From NCBI GenBank assembly GCA_037379345.1, contig CM074511.1:23419171-23483170 (forward strand): 64,000 nt of DNA. Reading direction: 5' to 3'. Each line of letters starts with the position of its first letter. Position 1 is the stretch's first letter. The translations under genes and the position numbers were made by a program. Source of the stretch: Perna viridis. Taxonomy: Eukaryota. Under the pieces are notes generated by a model. It made no database searches. It was not told the origin of the DNA and saw nothing but the letters and a program-made list of their open reading frames with translations. Positions 44,347 through 55,816 of the stretch are shown piece by piece.

Positions 44347-45595
44347 GCATGATACAAGTACATAGCATTACAAGACAATAATATACATTTAACAGTATAT
44401 ATAATTTTACACTGAGATAAACATGTAGTGATATAAAAAAGACAGAAAATAAAGAAAGTAAAGAAAGAAAGAAAGAAAGAACGAAAAAGTAAAATAATAT
44501 GAAGAAAAAAAGAGAAATAACAAAATAAAGCAACAGAAAAAGCTAGTACTCATGCGCACTTGATATTAGAATTAATAATGAACCAAATATTAAAAAAAAA
44601 ATAATTGAGTTTATTTTTTTCGGTTCTTCTAGAAAAATACACCCTCCTTAAGTAAGCGCCCATAGTCGTTGATGAACCTTTGCACACGCTTAAAATCATA
44701 ATTTTTAGTATCGCCAAAGAGGATACTATCGATGTGAGTTTTGCAAGTTGCGAGTTAAATAATTTGTTTGTTACAACATAGAAATATATTCTGAATTTCT
44801 AAAACATGTGCACAGTCACAAACCCCATAATTTGTAATACTTTTGTGGAAAAGATCATACTTAATGGCACTGCACTTGTACAAAAAACAAGACCTTTGTA
44901 ATATTGCCGAAATATTTAATAAGATATTGGAAAAATAGTTGCGACAACGCAAGCAAAAATCATGTACAACTTGAATAATTCTTTATATATTTAATCATAC
45001 TTTTAATACGAATAATTTTACAAGGTACATGTAAAGTTTTTTCTTTTCAACTTAACAAAAATACAAAAAAAAAAAAAACATTTAACACGTGTTTTACTGG
45101 TATATGACCCCTTTCAGATTAAATACCTATTGTTTAAGAGCAAATGAATATTTTTATCAAATGATTGAACACCGGTGAAATAAGAAACCCATTCAAGACT
45201 TAACTGGATCACTATTTTTACGCACAAGCCGTGAAAATCTTAAGGAGAATACACAGATTAAGACTTGTTGTCAACGTTAAGATATAGAACTTACAAAATG
45301 GAAGAAACAGAGCCATGAACTAACTAAAGAAAGAATTTTGGGGTAAATACATAAAATAGTACTTCTTTACACGATTTTATTAATGATATTATGTAAAGTT
45401 TTGAATTTAAAATATGGAAATTAAACTTTCTCGGTCGATGTAATTACATACATAAGTGTGTATTACTAATTTGTATTTTTTTTACCTTAATCATACGTGT
45501 CTGGGTAAAACTCGCCGTTTTCTTCAGATTAAATGTCATTTCGAGTAATAATGCATCTTTCTTTTCTGTACTTTTTTTCAGATTTTTGACCGGAA

Positions 45596-45809
45596 ATGGC
45601 GATTCCACTGAAAAAAGAGAGAGTATATTATTTATATATATGTCACCTTGCTCTACGTAAAGCGGCACATGCGATTGTCAAACTTTTTGACAGACGCCAT
45701 TATGGTGGCTTAGTACCAGCATTAAAAATAGAAAGAAAAAAACTTCAGGAGTTGATAGATGACGGAAAAATTACTGAAACCCAACTTAAGATTGTCAATG
45801 AGCTTATAG
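45596..45809 (+). CDS. Coding exon 1 of the NLR-like gene (start of the HEPN-like domain)
   Basis: Polypyrimidine acceptor cttttttcAG at 45580-45581; ORF MAIPLKKERVYYLYICHLALRKAAHAIVKLFDRR...; donor G|GTAAAT at 45810, phase 1. Confidence 0.85.
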
Positions 45810-48800
45810 GTAAATAAACTTTGAGTGTCTTTAAAAATTTGTAAGTAACATGAAGGTTTATACCTCTCAAAATGGTTTTTTTTACGAAACGGTTTGTCAA
45901 GTTCTTACATAACGCAATGCCATTGGCGAATTCAAAGAGAGTTTCAAGAAAAAAGGGGTTCCAGGCTATCATTGGCAATTTCGTTACATAAAATTTCACG
46001 AAATGAACAAGAAATTTTCTACTGAATGGGAATGGAGGTTTCAACATTCACCACCAACCCCCTTCCCACAGCCCATCACTTCGGAGCCGTCACTAGATGC
46101 CAGCATCACACTCTATAGCATGTGTTAACACAGAAAAAAACAACAAAAGAGAGATACTATCTGACTTTCCGCAATTTCCAAATCAAAATTTTGGACATAT
46201 AATCCAAATGTTAAAGAAATCACGAACGTCAAGGCTCAGTCTGAAATGTGACAATTTTTGTTGTAGATAATAGCAGTGAGGGTTTAAGTACAGAGCTTCT
46301 GTTAATCTTAGTGCAAGCTTTGACAGAAATAAAGATTCCACAATGGCGTCCGTTGTCAATGGATACATCGGTCGGTGCGGATCTATTCAGAATCGAATTT
46401 TATAAAAACTATATTTTAAGTCAAAAGGACGAAAAGATTGAGGATGATGTCTTCACTACAATGTCGACAGAGCTGACAGAGGTATGTCATATTCCCAAGC
46501 AATACTTTTGTGACTTATACATGATCGAAACAACAATAACTTCTAAACATGCTATGTCATCATTTTTGTTGTAGCTAATCAAAGAATATACTAGTAACTA
46601 CAGGATACAATGAGTTAAAACGAACTGAATTTAGAACTAAAAAAGATATGCAGATCCGATAACAAAAAAAATTTATATGTGTGATTTCAATACCGATAAA
46701 TGGAAGAGTAATCAAGGGAACCAATGTTCTATCGGAAATCAAAAGAAAGTAATCCTGGGACAAAGACCAAACACGGAAAACAGACACACACAACAAAGAA
46801 CATTAAGTAACTAAAATAATACATACAGAGTAACAAAAGCAAATGAGCAACTCGAACTCCACTAAAAACTGGGAGCATGGACCAGCATATAAATTATGAG
46901 CTTTTCTCGGAAGATCCACTTCGATGATCGCGACACAACCCACTGAAAAAGAGAAGAAATTCATTTTCTCGGATTTTAAAGGTGAAATAACGTCATTACC
47001 CTTGTATTGTTTCTTTACAGGCAATAGAAAGAACAGGGGGTGAAATATTACCTAAGAAAAATAATGAGATACAAAGTTTACTTGACAATGAGGAGATAGA
47101 ATACATCATAGAATTGTTACAGCAACAGAAGGAAGAATTTTCCTCTAACGATCCTATTCCCAAATCAGTAAAAGGTAACATGTTTACACATAAATTTTAT
47201 CAGTAATACACAGATTTGTAAATTCGCATATTAATTCTTTTTATAGACCTTACGAAATAGAACTTATAAGACTTAAGCAGTAAATAAAATCAAAAGAATA
47301 AGGGAAAGGTTTTTTTTCTGGAAATCATAAATACCTCAACATCTGAAATGATAAAATATAAACATTACATCTCACTGGTTATGAACTAGAAGTACACACC
47401 TCCATTAAACTTGACATGTATTTTATGGGTTACAATATCGTTTTTCAAGTTAGAAAACATTTGGTTGGTCAACCGATTATCTCAATATCATATTTTAACC
47501 TAAGTGTGACCGACGGGAGAGCAAAGAAAATATGATTTATAATTTTGATAAAGCTTTCAATGTATACTTATCGAACTACAAGTATAATTCATAATACATT
47601 TGAAAAAAAGTAATCTACATATCATTTCGTCCACACATTTTTTTTGTCACAATAAATCGACCCACTTTGTAAATTTATTACAGAATCTATCGATCGGAAG
47701 GTTCAGCGATGGAGAGAACTAGATAACAATTTTATAGAAACTAACTCTTCACAGATGATAATGGAAAAGGTCAAAGAGAATGTTTTCGTTATTCTAACTG
47801 GAGAATCGAGAAACGGAAAAACAGTAACAGCTAGGCATGTAGCCTTGCGACTCCATGATGAGGAAGGCTATCAGATTGTTATAGTCAAAGATCCAGGGGA
47901 ATTCGTTAAATACAAACACCGTTCAAGAAAACAGTTGTTGATAATAGATAACTTTTGTGGTCGTTTTTCCCCGAATCAACAGCAAATATCACAATGGGCA
48001 CATCATCTAGATTCTCTTGAGGATATTTCTAGAGATTCAGAAAACTTGCGCTTTCTTCTGACCTGCAAAAAACGCGTGTACAACTCGCGACAATTTGGTA
48101 AAGTGTTTAACAGCATAACATGGTTTGAATGCAAATTGTTTAGTAACAGCTATCCATATAGTAGAAAAGAGAAACAAAAAATAGCTTCTTCGTATATCGG
48201 ATATAGGGAAATGGCACGACTGGACGAAGACATTGTAAAAGATTTTAGCAAGTTTCTATTATTTTGTCAATTATGCAGCATTGCCAATGTCAGAAATCAA
48301 ATTGATTTATTTAAAGAATCAGTACAATTGGTCAGTACCGAGATCCAAAGTGCATGCGATAATGATGAATGGGCGTTTTTCATTTTGACTCTTTTGGTTG
48401 TATTTGATAATAAACTTGACAAACGACTGTTTCATGGGAAGATAAGTAAACAGCAACAGATCATTATTGACGAAATTTGCTCGGACTGTGGTCTACAAAA
48501 TAATCCAACAATGTTATTTTTATCCTTTAGAGTGCAAGCTATGCTTGGTAAACTAATAGAAGAAAGAAATAAATATATTAAAGCACTGAATGGCAGACTT
48601 TTTGACGTTATGTGTTTGTTCGTTACAGAAAATAGAAACGCATTTATGTCCATCCTCAAACACGGTAAGAGCCGTTTTCTTAGTGAACGAACACAGTTGC
48701 AGTCCCTGGAAGAAACTAAAAGTGAAGGTATCATATTGATTCCACCTGACTTGGAATCTGCGTTTTTCAACAGAATTTCTCAAGACCTAAGAGACCACAA

Positions 48801-51800
48801 ATATTGGGAGGTTTTCTCATCACCACAGACATGTTATAAGAACTATCGTAAAAGATTGTTGAAATTTCTTGAAAATTTAGAAGATTTGGATTCAGTAATC
48901 GAAGACGCTGCTGTGCCTCTTTATATTTCATCGTTTATGGGATTTAAAGATTTCATCGAGTTTTTTCTTCGAGACAATACCCTTGTGAGTAGAAAAAATG
49001 ACGAAAGTGGAATGACACCTTTGCATGCTGCGTGCTTAATGGGACATAGACATATTATCGAATTATTCATTGCAAATTTCTATGTCGATTCGAAAACTGT
49101 AGATGGATTTACCCCACTGTATCTCGCGTCAAAATTGGGCCATGCATCAGTTGTCAGTCGTCTTCTAGAAGAGAGAGTAGATGTTAATGATGTAACTGAG
49201 ACCGGTTCAACAGCATTAATTGCCGCTTCTAAAGGTGGCCATTTACCAGTCATTAAAATATTGCTGAACAATAAAGCTAATGTAAATAAATGTAAAAACG
49301 ATGGAAGCTCCCCACTTCTCATTGCAACACAACATGGTCACAATGAAGCCGTTAAATATTTAATTGAAAACAAAGCCGACGCGAATCTGACAAACAAAGC
49401 TGGTTCTTCCCCCTTGTACCTGGCGTGTGCATTTGGTCACATGGGCATTGTCGATTTACTGTTAAAAGCGGAAGATGACTTGCTTCAGACCGAGGAGTCG
49501 GGTTTCAACTTACTTTTTGTAGCTTGTAAAAATGGAAATAGTTCTGTAGTCGAAACATTAGCTATTTCAGGCGTTAATATAAACAGAACGAATAAATTCG
49601 GAGTAAGTCCTCTTTACATCGCTAGTCAAGAAGGACACGAAATTGTTGTTGAAGTTTTGTTAAGAAATGGATCAGAAGTGGATAAAGGAAATCAGGACCA
49701 GTTTTCACCTCTATATATCGCTTGTCTACAAGGACATAATGCAGTTGCTAAATTACTTCTCAAAAAGTGTTCGGATATCAATGCGTCATTCTATAAGGGC
49801 GCAACGGCATTGTTTCTTGCAAGCCAGGAAGGGAATGTCGATTTGACAAAAACTTTGATTGATTACAACGCAATAGTCAACAAAAGTGATGACAATGACA
49901 CCACTCCGTTGTTTATTGCTTGTCAAAATGGACATGACAGTATTGCTTCATTACTGATACGCCACAAGGCGGAGGTCGACAAGGCTACAAAACAGGGTAC
50001 AACGCCTCTTCACATAACATGTCAGAAAAATCACGTGAGTATCGCAGACATGCTGATGACGAAAAACGCCAATGTAAACAGTCGATCGGGAAATGCAGTA
50101 ACACCACTTCATATAGCGTGTGAATATGGTAATGCAGAAATTGCAGCCCTTTTGATAGCAAATGGTGCTAAAGTTAATATAAGCACTGTCGACGGAATTA
50201 CGCCTCTTTTCATTGCAAGTCAAAATGGACATTCAGCTGTGGTTGAGCTATTGATAATAAACAGAGCAGATACTAATGCGTGCATTAGTAGTGGAGCAAC
50301 ACCACTTCATATTTCTTGCGAAATGAATCAGTTTGGCGTGGTAAAAATACTCCTTGAGTACAACGCAAACGTCAACTTAAGCAACAAAGACCGGTTAACG
50401 CCATTATATGTCGCATGTGAAAAGGGTCATACTTCAATAGTAGAACTATTATTAAAGCATTCTGCTTTGCAAAACAAAACAATATTTGACATATTCAAGT
50501 CATTGTGTGTTTCTTGTGAGAATGGCTATAAGGAGATCACACAGCTGCTGATAAAGAACGGAGCTGATGTCGCACAAAATACGACCGACGGGAGGACACC
50601 GCTATACATAGCCGTAGAGAATGGTCATACGGACGTGGCTGAGCTTCTACAACAGCATCAAGCAAACTTAGACATAAATGCAGGGAATGGCTATTCACCA
50701 TTGTGTATTGCATGTAAAAAAGGAGATATTGAAGTTGCTAAATCACTTCTCCGAAGTAAGGCAGACGTAAATAAAAAAACAAAGGATGGCGAAACTGCTC
50801 TTCACATCGCTTGTCGACTTGAAAGAGACGAATTCGTCAAACTTTTATTGGATAATCAATCGGATACAAATGTTTTCGACGACAACGAACAAACGCCTTT
50901 ATTGATTGCTACTAAACTGAACAGGAAAAAAATCGTTCAAAAGTTACTCGATAGTGGAGCTGAAGTAAATCCTGCAGAACTACAAGGACGAACTATGCCT
51001 TTACATATTGCATGCCAAAATAAAAACGTCGACATAGCAAAATTACTTTTGGATTATAAAGCTGACGTAAATGAGATAGACTGCCAACACGTTACACCAT
51101 TGGAAATAGCATGTAAAAATGAAGATGTAGCCATGGTAGACTTACTACTACAATACAAAGCAAACCTTAGTTCAAACCAAAACTCAGGACGTAGTCCACT
51201 CTTGATTGCATGCGAAGCACAAAGCATGGAACTTGTTGAAATTCTCTTGAAAGAAGATGCTGATACAAATTTATGTGACAAACGAGGACTTACTTCATTA
51301 CATATAGTTTGTCAAGTAGAAAATACTAAGTTGGCAAAGCTTCTTCTTGAGCACAAAGCCGATCCTAATGTAAAATGTGAAGGCGGATACACCCCGTTAA
51401 TGATAGCTTGTGACGCTGAAAACACAGAGTTGATAGATATGCTGCTCGAATACAAAGCATGCGCAGATGAAATAACTCCATCAGGATTTACCCCGTTACA
51501 AATAGCATGTAATAACGACAACAAAAATGTGGCATCATTGCTGATTAAATATGGAGCCAATTTGAATATAGAAGACCCCGAAGAATACACGCCTTTGTTT
51601 ACAGCATGTAGGAGAGGTGCTGAAAAAATGGTTAACTTTTTATTGAAGGAAAACGCAGACGTTAATAAAAGAAGCAAACAAGAATTTACTCCGTTACATA
51701 TCGTTTGTGGAAAAGGATGTACAAGTATTGTTCGTTCCTTGTTACAACACAACGCTAATGTCAATTTGTGCACTCAAGAAGGTTGCAGTCCTCTTTATAT

Positions 51801-53994
51801 CGCTTGTCAAGAAGGACACAGGGATATTGCAGAACTACTTATTCAAAACGATTGTGATATTGACATGGTAACTGACTCTAAAGTTTCTCCTCTTTATATT
51901 GCATGTGATTTTGGTCATACGACAATAGCCCATCTACTTTTAGTACATAACGCGGATGTAAATCTTTGTAAAGACGGTGGATTTTCTCCGCTGTATGTCG
52001 CCTCTGAGAAAGGTCACAAAGATATTGTTGAATTGCTCCTTAGTAAAAATGCGATTGTAAACCAAACACAGGGTGAAGGAGCAACTCCACTTTATGTAGC
52101 TGCTGAAGGGAAACACTATGATATTGTGAAACTTTTGATGGAAAACGAAGGGGATCCAACCATTAATACGACTTCCGGCCTATCTGCAATGCAAGTTATG
52201 TGTGAAGCTGGAAATAGGAATGTAGTTGAGATATTTCTAGAAAGCAATGTTAATCCAAATGTAACATTTCAGAATGGATCGACTCCTTTAACAGTAGCCT
52301 GTGAAATAGGTGATCAATATATGGTTGAGTTGTTAGTAAGTTACAATGCAGACGTGAAGAAAACAACTGAAGAAGGACTATGTCCGCTGTATATCGCTAC
52401 TGAAAATTACCAAACCGAAATTGTAAATTTCCTGCTAGAAAAGAAGGCTGATCCCGACCAGCGAACTTCGAACGAAGGTTTTTCGTCGCTTTATCTGTCA
52501 TCTCAACAAGGAAACTGGGATATAGCGGAGATTCTGCTTAATTATGACGCAGATACAAATATCAAGACGAAAAAAAGCTCAACACCTCTTCACGTTGCAT
52601 GCATTTTAAATCATCTTGCAATAGCTGCTCTCTTGATTGAAAATGGGGCCGAAATAAATTTAGCTACAAGCGAAGGCGGTACGCCACTTTATTTAGCATG
52701 TCAGGAAAATAACTTCCCAATCGTGAAGTTGCTTATTCAACATGGAGCTTCAGTAAACCAAGCAACAGATATCGGTGCTACCCCACTTTATAAAGCATGT
52801 GAAAAGGGTAATAGTGCAATAGTGGGTTTCTTGTTAACTAATAAAGCGAATCCTGATTTGTGCAAAGAAAACGGATTTTCGCCACTGTATTCAGCGTGTG
52901 AGATGGGACATTTAGATATTGTGGCTATGCTGTTGAAAACAAAAGCCAAAGTCAACTTCGTGACGACGGGTGGTGTTTCACCATTGCACATTGCATGCAG
53001 AGAAAATCACATCGAGATAGTGGAAAAACTTATCAACCACTATGCTTTCACAAACCTAGGTGACAACAACGGTCTATCTCCTCTTCATATGGCATGTGAA
53101 AAAGGGTGCCTCTCTATTGTTAAACTTTTACTCGCTCGAAACGCGGATGTAAACCAAAAACAGAATGACGGAAAATCTCCGTTACATATTGCCGTCGAAA
53201 AAGACTTTCTTGAATTGTCTCAATTGTTGCTAAAACATCATGCTAAAGTAAATGCAACCGACAACTCTGGTGCTTCACCACTTTTTGTTGCATGTGAGAA
53301 TGGACATTTCAACATTATAAAAGTTCTTTTAAAAAGAAATGGTGATATTAATCAAGGAAACAAGGCTAAGGCCTCGCCACTTTTTATAGCATGCGCAAGA
53401 GGTAACAGAAAAGTAGTCGAACATTTACTTCGAAATAACGCCGATGTTAATGCTAAAACAAGGAGAGGCCATACCCCACTGTCAATCGCTCGGCAAAACA
53501 GTCACTATGAAATCGCCGATATCTTAGCTAATACCGGTCTCGTTAAATCAAAACCGGAACCGCAGAATTTTGAGAAAGGTTTTCAAGAACCGCAGTTCTT
53601 TAACCCGGGACTTATGGCGCGGCTTGCCACTATTTACTCATTCGACGAACCAGATACGGAAGAAAAGTTTCAAGAAAACGAGGATTACATCATTAAAGAG
53701 GAAGTCGATCAGGAAGAATTCGAGTCGAATGACCAAAATATAGAATGTCGTTTGAAGACATTTGTAGATAGCCAAGAGACTTTTTCAAAAGACGAGAAAA
53801 CAGACGAAACTACTGTTAGACCAGAATTAACAAATACAAGTAGATCTAAGAAAACTGTAGATAATGAAATCGAACAAACAACTAAAGGAAAGAATGATGA
53901 CTTCGAGCCTCCTTCCAAGGAACAAAGAAATAAATTTAAAAGTATTGTAGAACGAAAAGTTATGCGAAAAAGTGCACTTTGCATCATTTTGTAA
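45596..53994 (+). CDS. NLR-like protein, 2297 aa: DZIP3-like HEPN / nSTAND3-type NTPase / ~47 ankyrin repeats / CaaX. Exons 45596-45809, 46267-46481, 47021-47174, 47684-53994
   Basis: All three introns are GT-AG with matching phases (1,0,1). The spliced length is 6894 nt (2298 codons) with no internal stop. An in-frame TGA lies between the acceptor at 45581 and the ATG. HEPN-like segments: 'DTSVGADLFRIEFYKN' and 'AIERTGG'. NTPase segments: 'WRELDNNFIET', Walker A GESRNGKT (47800-47823), Walker B LLIIDNFCG (47935-47961). 33-aa G-x-TPLxxAC repeats follow, and the protein ends KVMRKSALCIIL*. Confidence 0.92.
46267..46481 (+). CDS. Coding exon 2 of the NLR-like gene (HEPN core)
   Basis: tttttgttgtAG acceptor; reads DNSSEGLSTELLLILVQAL...DTSVGADLFRIEFYKNYILSQ...ELTE; donor GAG|GTATGT, phase 0. 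Confidence 0.88.
46705..46885 (-). mobile_element. Penelope-like 3' end fragment, antisense in intron 2 of the NLR-like gene
   Basis: gagtaatcaagggaaccaatg...gcaaatgagcaactcgaactccactaaaaactgggagcatggaccag is the reverse complement of 17013-17194. Confidence 0.88.
47021..47174 (+). CDS. Coding exon 3 of the NLR-like gene (end of HEPN plus helical linker); absent from the ORF track
   Basis: ttctttacAG acceptor; reads AIERTGGEILPKKNNEIQSLLDNEEIEYIIELLQQQKEEFSSNDPIPKSVK; donor AAG|GTAACA, phase 1. Confidence 0.88.
47684..53994 (+). CDS. Terminal 6311-nt exon of the NLR-like gene (NTPase, ankyrin array, CaaX tail)
   Basis: ttattacAG acceptor at 47682-47683, in frame with the 2079-aa ORF. Confidence 0.95.
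48901..53537 (+). repeat. Coding array of about 47 ankyrin repeats (~99-nt period, highly diverged at DNA level)
   Basis: Manual count of consecutive 32-35 aa units, from DAAVPLYISSFMG to GHTPLSIARQNSHYEIADIL. Confidence 0.93.
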
Positions 53995-54182
53995 TGGTGC
54001 TTGGCGATTGCAAGTAAATGAAAGTATATGTTTTGAATATTAAATATTATTTAATATCATTGGAAATTACTAACTCTTTAAATTTAAATTATCTAATTAA
54101 GTTCACTGACTGTGAAAATGTGTGGGTCGTCTCAAGTAATTTCCTCATTTTAGTTAAAAGCTCCCAGAAGACCGTATATGGC

Positions 54183-54261: not shown

Positions 54262-55816
54262 CCCAAAGGCTGGGCTCCGCTACCTCCAACTGCTAACAGA
54301 CATTTACTAATACAAACCACGCAAGCGGCCGTCGTGCAAGATCTGCAAGGATAGTCAAGACCGTAAAAAAACACCAATCGGGTTGGTTTAGTTTTCGCCC
54401 ATGATCTAAAATAAATTGTTATTTATGTACAGTTAAGTTTCCTTAATTAAATAGAATCAGTCAGAGAATTGTCCCGTGAAATAGAATTAGGGCCACAAAA
54501 ATATCATTGTGGATATCCTGGATAAGTCTAGGGTATGATTATGAAAATGCTTTATATCGTTAAGAATTACCGAATTTTTCCTCCAATCTAATTAAGCCAG
54601 TGATTGAAAATACACGTGGCTTTTTTACCACCTGGCTAAGATTTGATATTCTCCTAAAGGTATACGTTTTTTTTTTCTATCTTGAATTAAACATTTTGCA
54701 TGGGCAGATCCAGTGATTTAAAATCAAAGTACTCTTGTATTGAATCAAAATATATCAACGTTTAAATTTTTATGTCTCAAATTATCATCATTGCAAAAAC
54801 ACTTGTTGGGGATTATTCGAAAGTACAGGTATCAAACGTATCTAAACACAAATTTATGTTGTAACTGATTAATATTGAACTCTTCGGTTCATGTTTAATG
54901 CTTCATTCTGATTACGCAGGAGATTAAAAAGACACGCACACAGCAAAAAATTCTTGATGGATCGTAGTAGTGCACCAATTTGCGTAGTATTCAGGTTCGA
55001 TGTCGGTTTACATGGAACGCCAAGATGAAAGAACACAAAATTCCCCCGACACACTGCATAATAGAACTATAAAATTATAGTTAGCCTGTGTCAGTCTCTA
55101 AATTTGCAAGTCGAAATTAATTCAATTTGTCGACCTCCATGTCGAAACTGTTCAAACTTAAGCCACAATCATTGAAATAAATCATGTCCTTAGATACATG
55201 TCCCTCTCAACTAGCTACTTTTCTCAATTTATAAATTTTATACCTAGATATCGCATAGACACATATGTGTCATGTAAGAACGCTTAGTTTCTGGGCACTT
55301 AGTTCAAGAGACACGTACATTAACATAAACACCCAAGTTCAACAATCGTGTCTGGTGTAGTAAACACTAGCCATGCATTTTAAGGCTCTGGAGTACCCAC
55401 AGCTCTATCATCATAACGCATGGCCGAAATAGCCAAATAGAATGATAATATCACAAGGCCTCCGACTAACACCATTCCCGAGAATTGTACTATAAAAATT
55501 ATCATGCCATAATCTCAGGAAAGTTTTATTTTGTTTCTCAAGATACACGATACAGTGTGCTTTACATCAGGATGGTTTCGGGGGGTTATGCTACACTCTT
55601 GTTAAAAATTTAGTAAAAAAATGAACTTGAATACATGTATATCGGTAGTGAACGACTGGTTTATTCGAGTATAGCAGTAAACAGGTAGTGATGAGAGGTT
55701 AGAGATAAACCATTTTTAATTGGAAACCTAATTAATCAGAATATTTAGTTCGCAATTAAAGTTGTTATATGGGTTTGTTTATTGGTGTAAATAATACATA
55801 ATAAATAATATTAAAG

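Follow-up and report, generated by a model that had tools for sequence, protein, structure and literature searches.

The cellular placement of STAND and NLR-type switches is central to what they sense, and the known placements rely on N-terminal acylation, reversible S-acylation or a hydrophobic helix. In bacteria, the Avs5 system (AVAST type 5) joins a SIR2 effector to an nSTAND3 nucleoside triphosphatase (NTPase), and defence by PaAvs5-1 requires a membrane-localising sequence, which is N-terminal and hydrophobic (bioRxiv 10.1101/2025.07.08.663546). In bivalves, expansions of HEPN, STAND and ankyrin (ANK) proteins have been framed as immune or apoptotic systems, and prenylation is not mentioned there (PMC8195603). 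A literature search on nSTAND3 returned no mollusc study, while a search on CaaX or prenylation together with NLR, STAND or NACHT returned prenylated GBPs, OAS1 and S-acylated NLRP3 but no natively prenylated STAND or NACHT protein. The present analysis concerns one gene at positions 45,596–53,994 of a 64,000-nucleotide stretch of the green mussel Perna viridis (assembly GCA_037379345.1, contig CM074511.1, positions 23,419,171–23,483,170, forward strand), hereafter called the window. An earlier note on this DNA had described the gene as a giant NLR-like immune sensor tethered to a membrane through its C-terminus, and its remark that a described prenylated STAND receptor is not known agrees with the literature search.

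Judged from its sequence, the gene belongs to the mussel HEPN (DZIP3-type)-nSTAND3-ankyrin family, from whose other members it has diverged strongly. The architecture of the family is already catalogued; the variant that ends in a CaaX box appears to be undescribed. The reading preferred here, with moderate confidence, takes the product for a giant ankyrin platform or regulator that descends from this family and is tethered to a membrane by geranylgeranylation. It rests on a long, intact and transcribed reading frame, on the loss of both HEPN catalytic residues together with changes at three near-invariant NTPase positions, and on a polybasic C-terminus ending in C-I-I-L.

The open reading frame (ORF) listed at 47755–53994 on the forward strand encodes 2079 amino acids (aa), and upstream of 47755 the reading frame stays open as far as an AG acceptor at 47682–47683. 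Four coding exons (45596–45809, 46267–46481, 47021–47174 and 47684–53994), with GT/AG borders and compatible phases (0, 1, 0 and 1), sum to 6894 nt, corresponding to 2297 codons and a stop. ATG 45596 is fixed as the start by an in-frame TGA (45587–45589) that sits 9 nt 5' of it within exon 1. The window contains no N. Alignment of Logan RNA contigs from four RNA-like runs (four studies) covered 44800–50799. The joint 46481>47021 was present in contigs of runs X1 and X2 from two studies, 47174>47684 in contigs of X2, and 45809>46267 in an X1 contig of an allele with a 3-nt in-frame insertion, an extra TAA after 45789 (45789/45790, exon 1) that changes L-K to L-N-K by one codon. In the X1 contig, approximately 98 nt ending at 45341/45342 were also spliced to 45582, which represents a 5' untranslated region (UTR) exon. 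All of these joints were GT..AG and fell at the exact predicted borders; therefore, the contigs derive from spliced RNA and all three predicted junctions are correct. The spliced 2297-aa ORF of the earlier note and its three junctions could thus be confirmed. Contig cover of exon 4 was almost unbroken over 47704–50799, at a low depth of 3–8. Across 14 RNA-like runs from 5 studies, the word share of the gene ranged from 0.26 to 0.69. The highest value belonged to X1, where the aligned part can account for approximately 0.41 at most; therefore, most of 50800–53994 would also be present in the X1 contigs. The gene is expressed and comprises one 5'UTR exon and four coding exons:

45245..45342, forward strand: 5'UTR exon, 3' part, non-coding (X1 contig joined to 45582)
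45582..45809, forward strand: exon 1, coding from ATG 45596; N-terminal third of the HEPN_DZIP3-like domain (contigs, family profile)
46267..46481, forward strand: exon 2, core of the HEPN_DZIP3-like domain (PF18738 match, family profile, RNA joints)
47021..47174, forward strand: exon 3, C-terminal helices of the HEPN region and linker (family profile, RNA joints)
47684..53994, forward strand: exon 4, one 6311-nt coding exon with NTPase, ankyrin array, tail and stop (ORF, RNA contigs)

Two side observations were made in this part of the window. Contigs of X1 and X12 cover just the piece 45486–45609, with loose ends on both sides, and its flanks carry GT..AG signals of the minus strand (AC at 45484–45485, CT at 45608–45609); the probable explanation is an antisense exon that extends across the start codon at 45596. 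Intron 2 holds a dispersed repeat of approximately 185 bp (46700–46886) with more than 5600 first-look candidates in the genome. Its listed copies are 92–95% identical, the RNA contig depth over it reaches approximately 10,000–50,000, and no Rfam match was obtained. It looks like a young element of the short interspersed nuclear element or miniature inverted-repeat transposable element type, within many transcripts.

Domain searches were made exon by exon. HEPN_DZIP3 (PF18738) matched exon 2 alone with 24.5 bits (E 2.5e-5) against a cutoff of 27, compared with 48–118 bits in the homologues. A family profile built from 23 Mytilus N-termini matched exon 1 (profile positions 1–69, 23 bits), exon 2 (76–143, 45 bits), exon 3 (147–199, 8 bits) and the first 30 residues of exon 4 (203–231, 19 bits). 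These matches were collinear and totalled approximately 95 bits; therefore, the N-terminal domain appears to be a DZIP3-type HEPN domain split over three exons. Its catalytic motif is degenerate:

46404..46421, forward strand: degenerate HEPN catalytic motif, Y-K-N-Y-I-L-S (alignment to Mytilus homologues and profile)

The family motif reads Y-R-N-x-I-V-H, and in the gene studied K118 and S123 replace the catalytic Arg and His, so that K-N-Y-I-L-S stands in place of the catalytic R-x4-6-H (R-N-x-x-x-H in the family). RNxxxH was kept in 14 of 15 Mytilus proteins chosen for their full-length N-terminus, the exception being P0022.

The nSTAND3 profile (PF20720) matched exon 4 with 83.3 bits (cutoff 27.2, E 2e-23) over profile positions 1–153 of 155, and the following elements were located by this match, by column counts among 121 homologues, and by structural modelling:

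47731..48198, forward strand: nSTAND3 P-loop NTPase domain (PF20720 match)
47800..47823, forward strand: Walker A, G-E-S-R-N-G-K-T (column counts)
47935..47961, forward strand: Walker B, L-L-I-I-D-N-F-C-G (column counts)
48061..48069, forward strand: sensor-1 position, T-C-K (column counts)
47686..49005, forward strand: nucleotide-binding and oligomerisation (NOD) module, comprising the nucleotide-binding domain, helical domain and winged-helix-like region (AlphaFold2, Foldseek)

Walker A retains the general GxxxxGK[ST] pattern (GESRNGKT), while the family pattern GxxGxGK is broken by an Arg at the fourth position, which is Gly in 119 of the 121 homologues. The second acidic residue of Walker B serves hydrolysis; here hhhhDD is replaced by LLIIDN, whereas this position is Asp in 112 homologues and Asn in 8. 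The sensor-1 Arg is likewise replaced, with T-C-K in place of the T-C-R seen in 109 homologues (Lys in 4). Residues 1–440 of exon 4 were modelled with AlphaFold2 and 29 homologues, and the model reached a predicted local distance difference test (pLDDT) score of 86.4. Its top Foldseek match was EfAvs5 (SIR2-STAND; 9jap_A, E 2.8e-7), and the longest VIA alignments were obtained with Dark (281 residues, Z 11.6), NLRP3 (310, Z 11.3) and NLRC4 (302, Z 11.2); AAA+ proteins score about as high over the nucleotide-binding domain alone. The STAND layout is present, with the nucleotide-binding, helical and winged-helix folds (the NOD part as modelled) followed by 46 ankyrin repeats. No Pfam match to NACHT, NB-ARC or leucine-rich repeats (LRR) was obtained on any exon, and searches of NCBIfam and PADLOC yielded just weak P-loop or ankyrin matches. 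The protein is not an NLR in the strict sense, and its NLR likeness is limited to the three-part logic.

Several parts of the earlier description were borne out by these results, namely the effector-like N-terminus of HEPN type (through the collinear profile across exons 1–3), the P-loop NTPase of STAND type, and the LRR-free effector-STAND-repeat architecture (through the profiles and the NOD fold model). In the Pfam check that it proposed, nSTAND3 scored above its cutoff, Ank was marked on 43 stretches and HEPN_DZIP3, on exon 2 alone, fell short of its cutoff. The claim of an 'effector plus switch' immune sensor could not be supported for this gene. An active RNase or NTPase switch in this copy appears doubtful because both HEPN catalytic residues are lost and three near-invariant NTPase positions are changed.

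A full HMMER scan across 1.84 billion representatives revealed 808 relatives, of which the best were 29–32% identical and none exceeded 32%. The named relatives were Mytilus proteins that carry the annotation 'DZIP3-like HEPN domain-containing' and share the HEPN-nSTAND3-ANK order. In the 723-Mb genome of P. viridis itself, at least 94 nSTAND3 matches were found on contigs C1, C3–C11 and C13–C15, the best of them just 27% identical to the gene studied. Other paralogues of this genome have Mytilus partners at 31.9–49% identity, and three library proteins from Logan assemblies were 99.6–100% identical to paralogues in the genome; these identities place the organism among mussel-like bivalves outside Mytilus. 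The HEPN-STAND-ANK expansion in bivalves that the earlier note mentioned is evident from these counts. The gene studied has the third-longest terminal branch among the 169 rows of the NTPase tree. A word-indexed search with residues 1–440 of exon 4 against proteins of 1156–3678 aa returned nothing, and an exact look-up of the 2079-aa ORF returned no record.

Tandem nSTAND3-ANK clusters were also observed elsewhere in the genome, at C10:10.37-10.92 Mb (L036, L037, L040–L042 and L045), C15:26.8-27.1 Mb and C6:0.78-4.1 Mb. Some of their NTPase domains are near-identical, with terminal branches of 0.002–0.01, which points to very recent local amplification.

These data bear on the possibility that the protein is a fully functional NLR-like sensor, in which the ankyrin repeats detect a ligand, the NTPase serves as an oligomerising switch, the HEPN RNase is the executing effector, and the prenylated sensor end tethers the whole to a membrane. 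Such a sensor would fit the effector-NOD-repeat layout and the STAND fold, the extent of the family (at least 94 own-genome matches and 808 library representatives), the valid CaaX signal described below, and the precedent of bacterial Avs5, an antiviral sensor of the same Pfam NTPase family that requires membrane localisation. The substitutions nevertheless make it rather improbable for this copy. Arg to Lys and His to Ser in HEPN contrast with the RNxxxH of 14 of the 15 Mytilus proteins and of the CaaX-ended clade presented below, and the P-loop Arg, Walker B DN and sensor Lys contrast with 119, 112 and 109 of 121 homologues, respectively; the third-longest terminal branch of 169 rows points the same way.

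A self-derived hidden Markov model (HMM) resolved the ankyrin array into an N-terminal cap and 46 contiguous 33-residue repeats with a single 1-residue slip, while Pfam marked 43 Ank stretches on exon 4:

48916..53556, forward strand: ankyrin array, cap and 46 repeats (self-derived HMM, Pfam Ank families)

The long array of the earlier note is real, and its count of approximately 47 becomes 46 in-register repeats plus a cap. Tandem Repeats Finder did not find a DNA-level tandem repeat in the array. The array is therefore ancient and genuine, and a recent duplication or assembly collapse was rejected as its origin. It is the longest among the paralogues surveyed. A PDB profile search was swamped by ankyrin repeats, which the alignment rows carried. 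Separately, the paralogue L048 (G000:C9:32654032-32660428) has a 1932-aa single-exon ORF with approximately 42 ankyrin motifs; thus, very long ankyrin arrays are not unique to the gene studied.

The array is followed by a tail in which the acidic linker, basic stretch and terminal CIIL described in the earlier note could all be recognised, in an open and stop-free frame:

53557..53916, forward strand: acidic tail of biased composition (translation; not confidently modelled)
53917..53979, forward strand: polybasic stretch with 8 K/R and 2 D/E (translation)
53980..53994, forward strand: CaaX box C-I-I-L (Cys2294) and TAA stop (translation)

The tail runs for 155 codons without a stop, while each of the remaining five frames contains 4–17 stops, and none of 20,000 shuffles gave a stop-free tail (P < 1/20,000). 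The best donor-like site inside it scored 2.8 bits, compared with 6.0–9.4 bits for the three donors used. Beyond the stop, the sequence carries ATTAAA at 54039 and AATAAA at 54410. It contains 34 acidic residues, and its last 25 residues comprise 8 K/R, all within the 21 residues before the box, then C-I-I-L and TAA. A single-sequence model of the last 230 aa had a pLDDT of 42.8, and only the final helix (residues 206–229) reached approximately 70. An amphipathic helix at the basic stretch was considered and dropped, since the hydrophobic moment was just 0.1–0.25.

The end of the protein has the form of a GGTase-I substrate, with Cys at minus 4, aliphatic residues at a1 and a2, Leu at X, and then the TAA stop. 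A canonical CaaL-type box after 8 K/R within 21 residues occurred at 0.16% of internal family positions. An accessible C-terminal CaaL on a disordered tail is an expected substrate of GGTase-I, and the P. viridis genome contains three prenyltransferase-beta loci and one ICMT locus. When CIIL replaced the transmembrane domain of yeast SNAREs, [3H]geranylgeranyl was incorporated and membrane attachment resulted from this alone (PMC2192637), and CIIL is the native C-terminus of yeast Rho2 (PMC11304957). CIIL is a proven geranylgeranylation signal in yeast, and lipidation of the present protein is predicted.

The occurrence of such ends in the family was surveyed in 150 representatives and 40 own-genome paralogue ORFs, many of which stop inside a repeat and may have further exons. 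A basic stretch followed by a CaaX-type end was found in L033 of P. viridis (contig C9; CCTIS) and in P0092 of Mytilus (CCSIT), and a polybasic stretch with CKMQ in P0073. L061 (G000:C8:4290274-4294777, minus strand), a 1301-aa ORF with approximately 15 ankyrin repeats, has a K/R-rich stretch and ends in CTTM; L059, its nearest paralogue, is without a CaaX-like end. P0022 and P0016 end in CCKII and CRML, respectively. Among 188 family ends, 4 had the pattern C-x-[ILVM]-x preceded by a net-basic stretch, compared with 0.31 expected from internal positions.

One group among these forms a clade. L033 (G000:C9:24536635-24539536, minus strand) is sister to Mytilus P0092 with 100% support, and a search from P0092 (M. 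edulis XP_071178430.1) recovered two isoforms of M. californianus LOC127712207 (P0168 and P0169) and two genes of M. trossulus, LOC134681362 and LOC134681361 (P0170 and P0171). The Mytilus members end in CCSIT (P0092 and P0168), CCSII (P0169 and P0171) and ACSIM (P0170). They share 77–85% identity overall, compared with 23–80% in the 41 aligned columns before the box. Between L033, which ends in C-T-I-S, and the Mytilus members, identity is 49% overall and 5–20% in the approximately 20 tail columns that align. The next relatives of the clade, at 38% identity, are without such an end. As the box is conserved while the rest of the tail diverges, the CaaX end is under selection in at least one lineage of the family. 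The clade also keeps RNxxxH (the HEPN core of L033 lies outside the DNA examined), GxxGxGK[ST], DD and TCR, and L033 has an upstream HEPN exon, as in the gene studied. C-terminal prenylation thus looks like a selected theme in the HEPN-nSTAND3-ANK family. From its separate place on the NTPase tree, the CIIL of the gene studied looks like an acquisition independent of the CaaX clade. With regard to the survey of bivalve homologues proposed in the earlier note, a separate, intact clade conserves a CaaX end, and no orthologue of the gene studied was found in the collections searched.

Several observations weigh against the preferred reading. The enrichment of basic CaaX-like ends rests on approximately two independent cases once the query is removed and the orthologous pair is counted once. 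The Cys-at-minus-4 ends are scattered on the NTPase tree, with 8 changes for 9 labelled rows, and the number of changes was as low in 68 of 500 shuffles. No second copy of the tail was found in the P. viridis genome, and a word-indexed search of protein databases with residues 240–400 of the last 400 aa returned no relatives. No orthologue that could show conservation of CIIL occurred in any collection searched. The contig alignment covered 44800–50799, and it is from the ORF and the word shares that the mRNA is predicted to use the CIIL stop. The Arg-to-Lys and Asp-to-Asn changes are conservative, so some residual nucleotide binding or activity is possible. Finally, the RNA contigs contained 17 polymorphisms, 6 synonymous and 11 non-synonymous, where 21% synonymous would be expected; the difference is not significant. 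This split does not demonstrate purifying selection and suggests weak constraint at most.

Part of this evidence would be expected if the product were soluble in the cytosol and CIIL an unused chance feature of this STAND-ankyrin protein. With Cys at 3.4% of family residues, a few Cys-at-minus-4 ends are expected, and both the scatter of these ends on the tree and the orphan tail without orthologues are compatible with chance. This explanation is considered unlikely, since a canonical motif after 8 K/R in 21 residues is rare among internal family positions (0.16%), the signal is proven in yeast, a CaaL on an accessible disordered tail is, as general knowledge, an expected GGTase-I substrate, and a related clade conserves its CaaX box.

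A different explanation is that the gene arose by duplication in this lineage alone and is on its way to being lost by drift; it would remain intact and weakly transcribed for now, without a selected function. With such drift the long branch, the missing orthologue, the five changes at catalytic or near-invariant positions, the contig depth of 3–8 and the 6 to 11 polymorphism split, not significantly off the neutral expectation, are all consistent. The state of the gene argues otherwise and makes drift rather improbable. There are 2297 codons without a stop or frameshift, 46 repeats are held in a 33-residue register, the tail frame is open (P < 1/20,000), and the splice sites are intact and used. 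Furthermore, the sole indel polymorphism is 3 nt and in frame, and 9 of the 11 non-synonymous variants are conservative (L/V, R/K twice, V/M, I/V, F/L, L/I, N/S and A/T), the remaining two being R/Q.

In the preferred reading of a tethered ankyrin platform or regulator, GGTase-I would geranylgeranylate Cys2294, and the usual trimming of -IIL and carboxymethylation would follow. The lipid and the eight basic residues could then keep the C-terminus at the cytosolic face of an acidic membrane, and the acidic linker of approximately 110 residues may let the ankyrin solenoid and the NOD module extend away from it. As its own RNase activity would be lost, and probably its NTP hydrolysis as well, the protein would most likely act as a membrane-stationed binding platform, decoy or regulator, not as a self-contained sensor-effector. 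It could be fixed in a single nucleotide state and have catalytically intact paralogues as partners. A broader proposal can be offered tentatively, namely that selected and repeatedly acquired prenylation stations bivalve HEPN-nSTAND3-ankyrin NTPases on membranes, as the first natively prenylated class of STAND/NLR-like proteins, within which the present gene would encode a geranylgeranylated giant that is enzymatically silent and serves its intact relatives as a membrane decoy, scaffold or regulator. If true, a C-terminal CaaX box at the end that carries the repeats (the sensor end) would solve the placement problem in a new and readily testable way, and would do so in an immune-type family of commercially important mussels that is large and uncharacterised. 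The catalytically intact clade with its conserved CaaX box makes the stronger case for lipid-anchored STAND proteins and is the better experimental entry point, to which the gene studied adds a likely pseudo-enzyme variant.

Among known proteins, the closest in layout are the Mytilus HEPN/nSTAND3/ANK proteins (A0A8S3SHN9, A0A8B6FRC0 and A0A6J7ZWS3; P0007, P0009 and P0003), which share the HEPN_DZIP3-nSTAND3-ANK order, a collinear linker from HEPN to NTPase and an equal N-terminal length, with approximately 215 aa before the P-loop. However, they are just 29–32% identical in the NOD module, carry 6–30 repeats instead of 46 and have intact catalytic motifs, and most are without the tail and the CaaX box. 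The CaaX clade (P0092, P0168–P0171 and L033) has the HEPN-nSTAND3-ANK order, and its tail, which is short and basic and has Cys at minus 4, makes the same type of proposed anchor, although this is predicted in both. Its box is of the farnesyl type, C-[ST]-I-[TSIM], usually with a second Cys before it that could be S-acylated, whereas the present gene has CIIL. The clade further differs in its approximately 7–9 repeats, its intact HEPN and NTPase motifs and the conservation of its box across species, while the gene studied has no orthologue.

Bacterial Avs5 (SIR2-nSTAND3-TPR) has PF20720 in common with the mussel protein, gave the top structural match and follows the same effector-NOD-repeat layout. 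It is prokaryotic, with a SIR2 effector and TPR, Sel1 or PPR repeats, and it reaches the membrane through a hydrophobic helix located N-terminally, at the effector end, in contrast to the predicted C-terminal prenyl group at the repeat end here. NLRP3 is likewise a STAND NTPase brought to a membrane by a lipid and a basic patch, being S-acylated with a polybasic region (PMC11392533); its S-acylation is reversible, internal and beside NACHT, in a protein with LRR and PYD, whereas the isoprenoid predicted here would be irreversible and C-terminal. GBP1, GBP2, GBP5 and OAS1 p46 act in innate immunity and are placed on membranes through a CaaX box at the C-terminus (PMC12091997, PMC13128109, PMC10683996). 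These proteins, dynamin-like GTPases or a nucleotidyltransferase, do not belong to the STAND class and lack a repeat sensor. The canonical ankyrins and NOMPC, the top PDB sequence matches for the repeats, use a very long ankyrin solenoid as a membrane-associated platform or spring. They have 24–29 repeats compared with 46 and no NTPase or HEPN domain, and their membrane link is made through partners or a channel domain.

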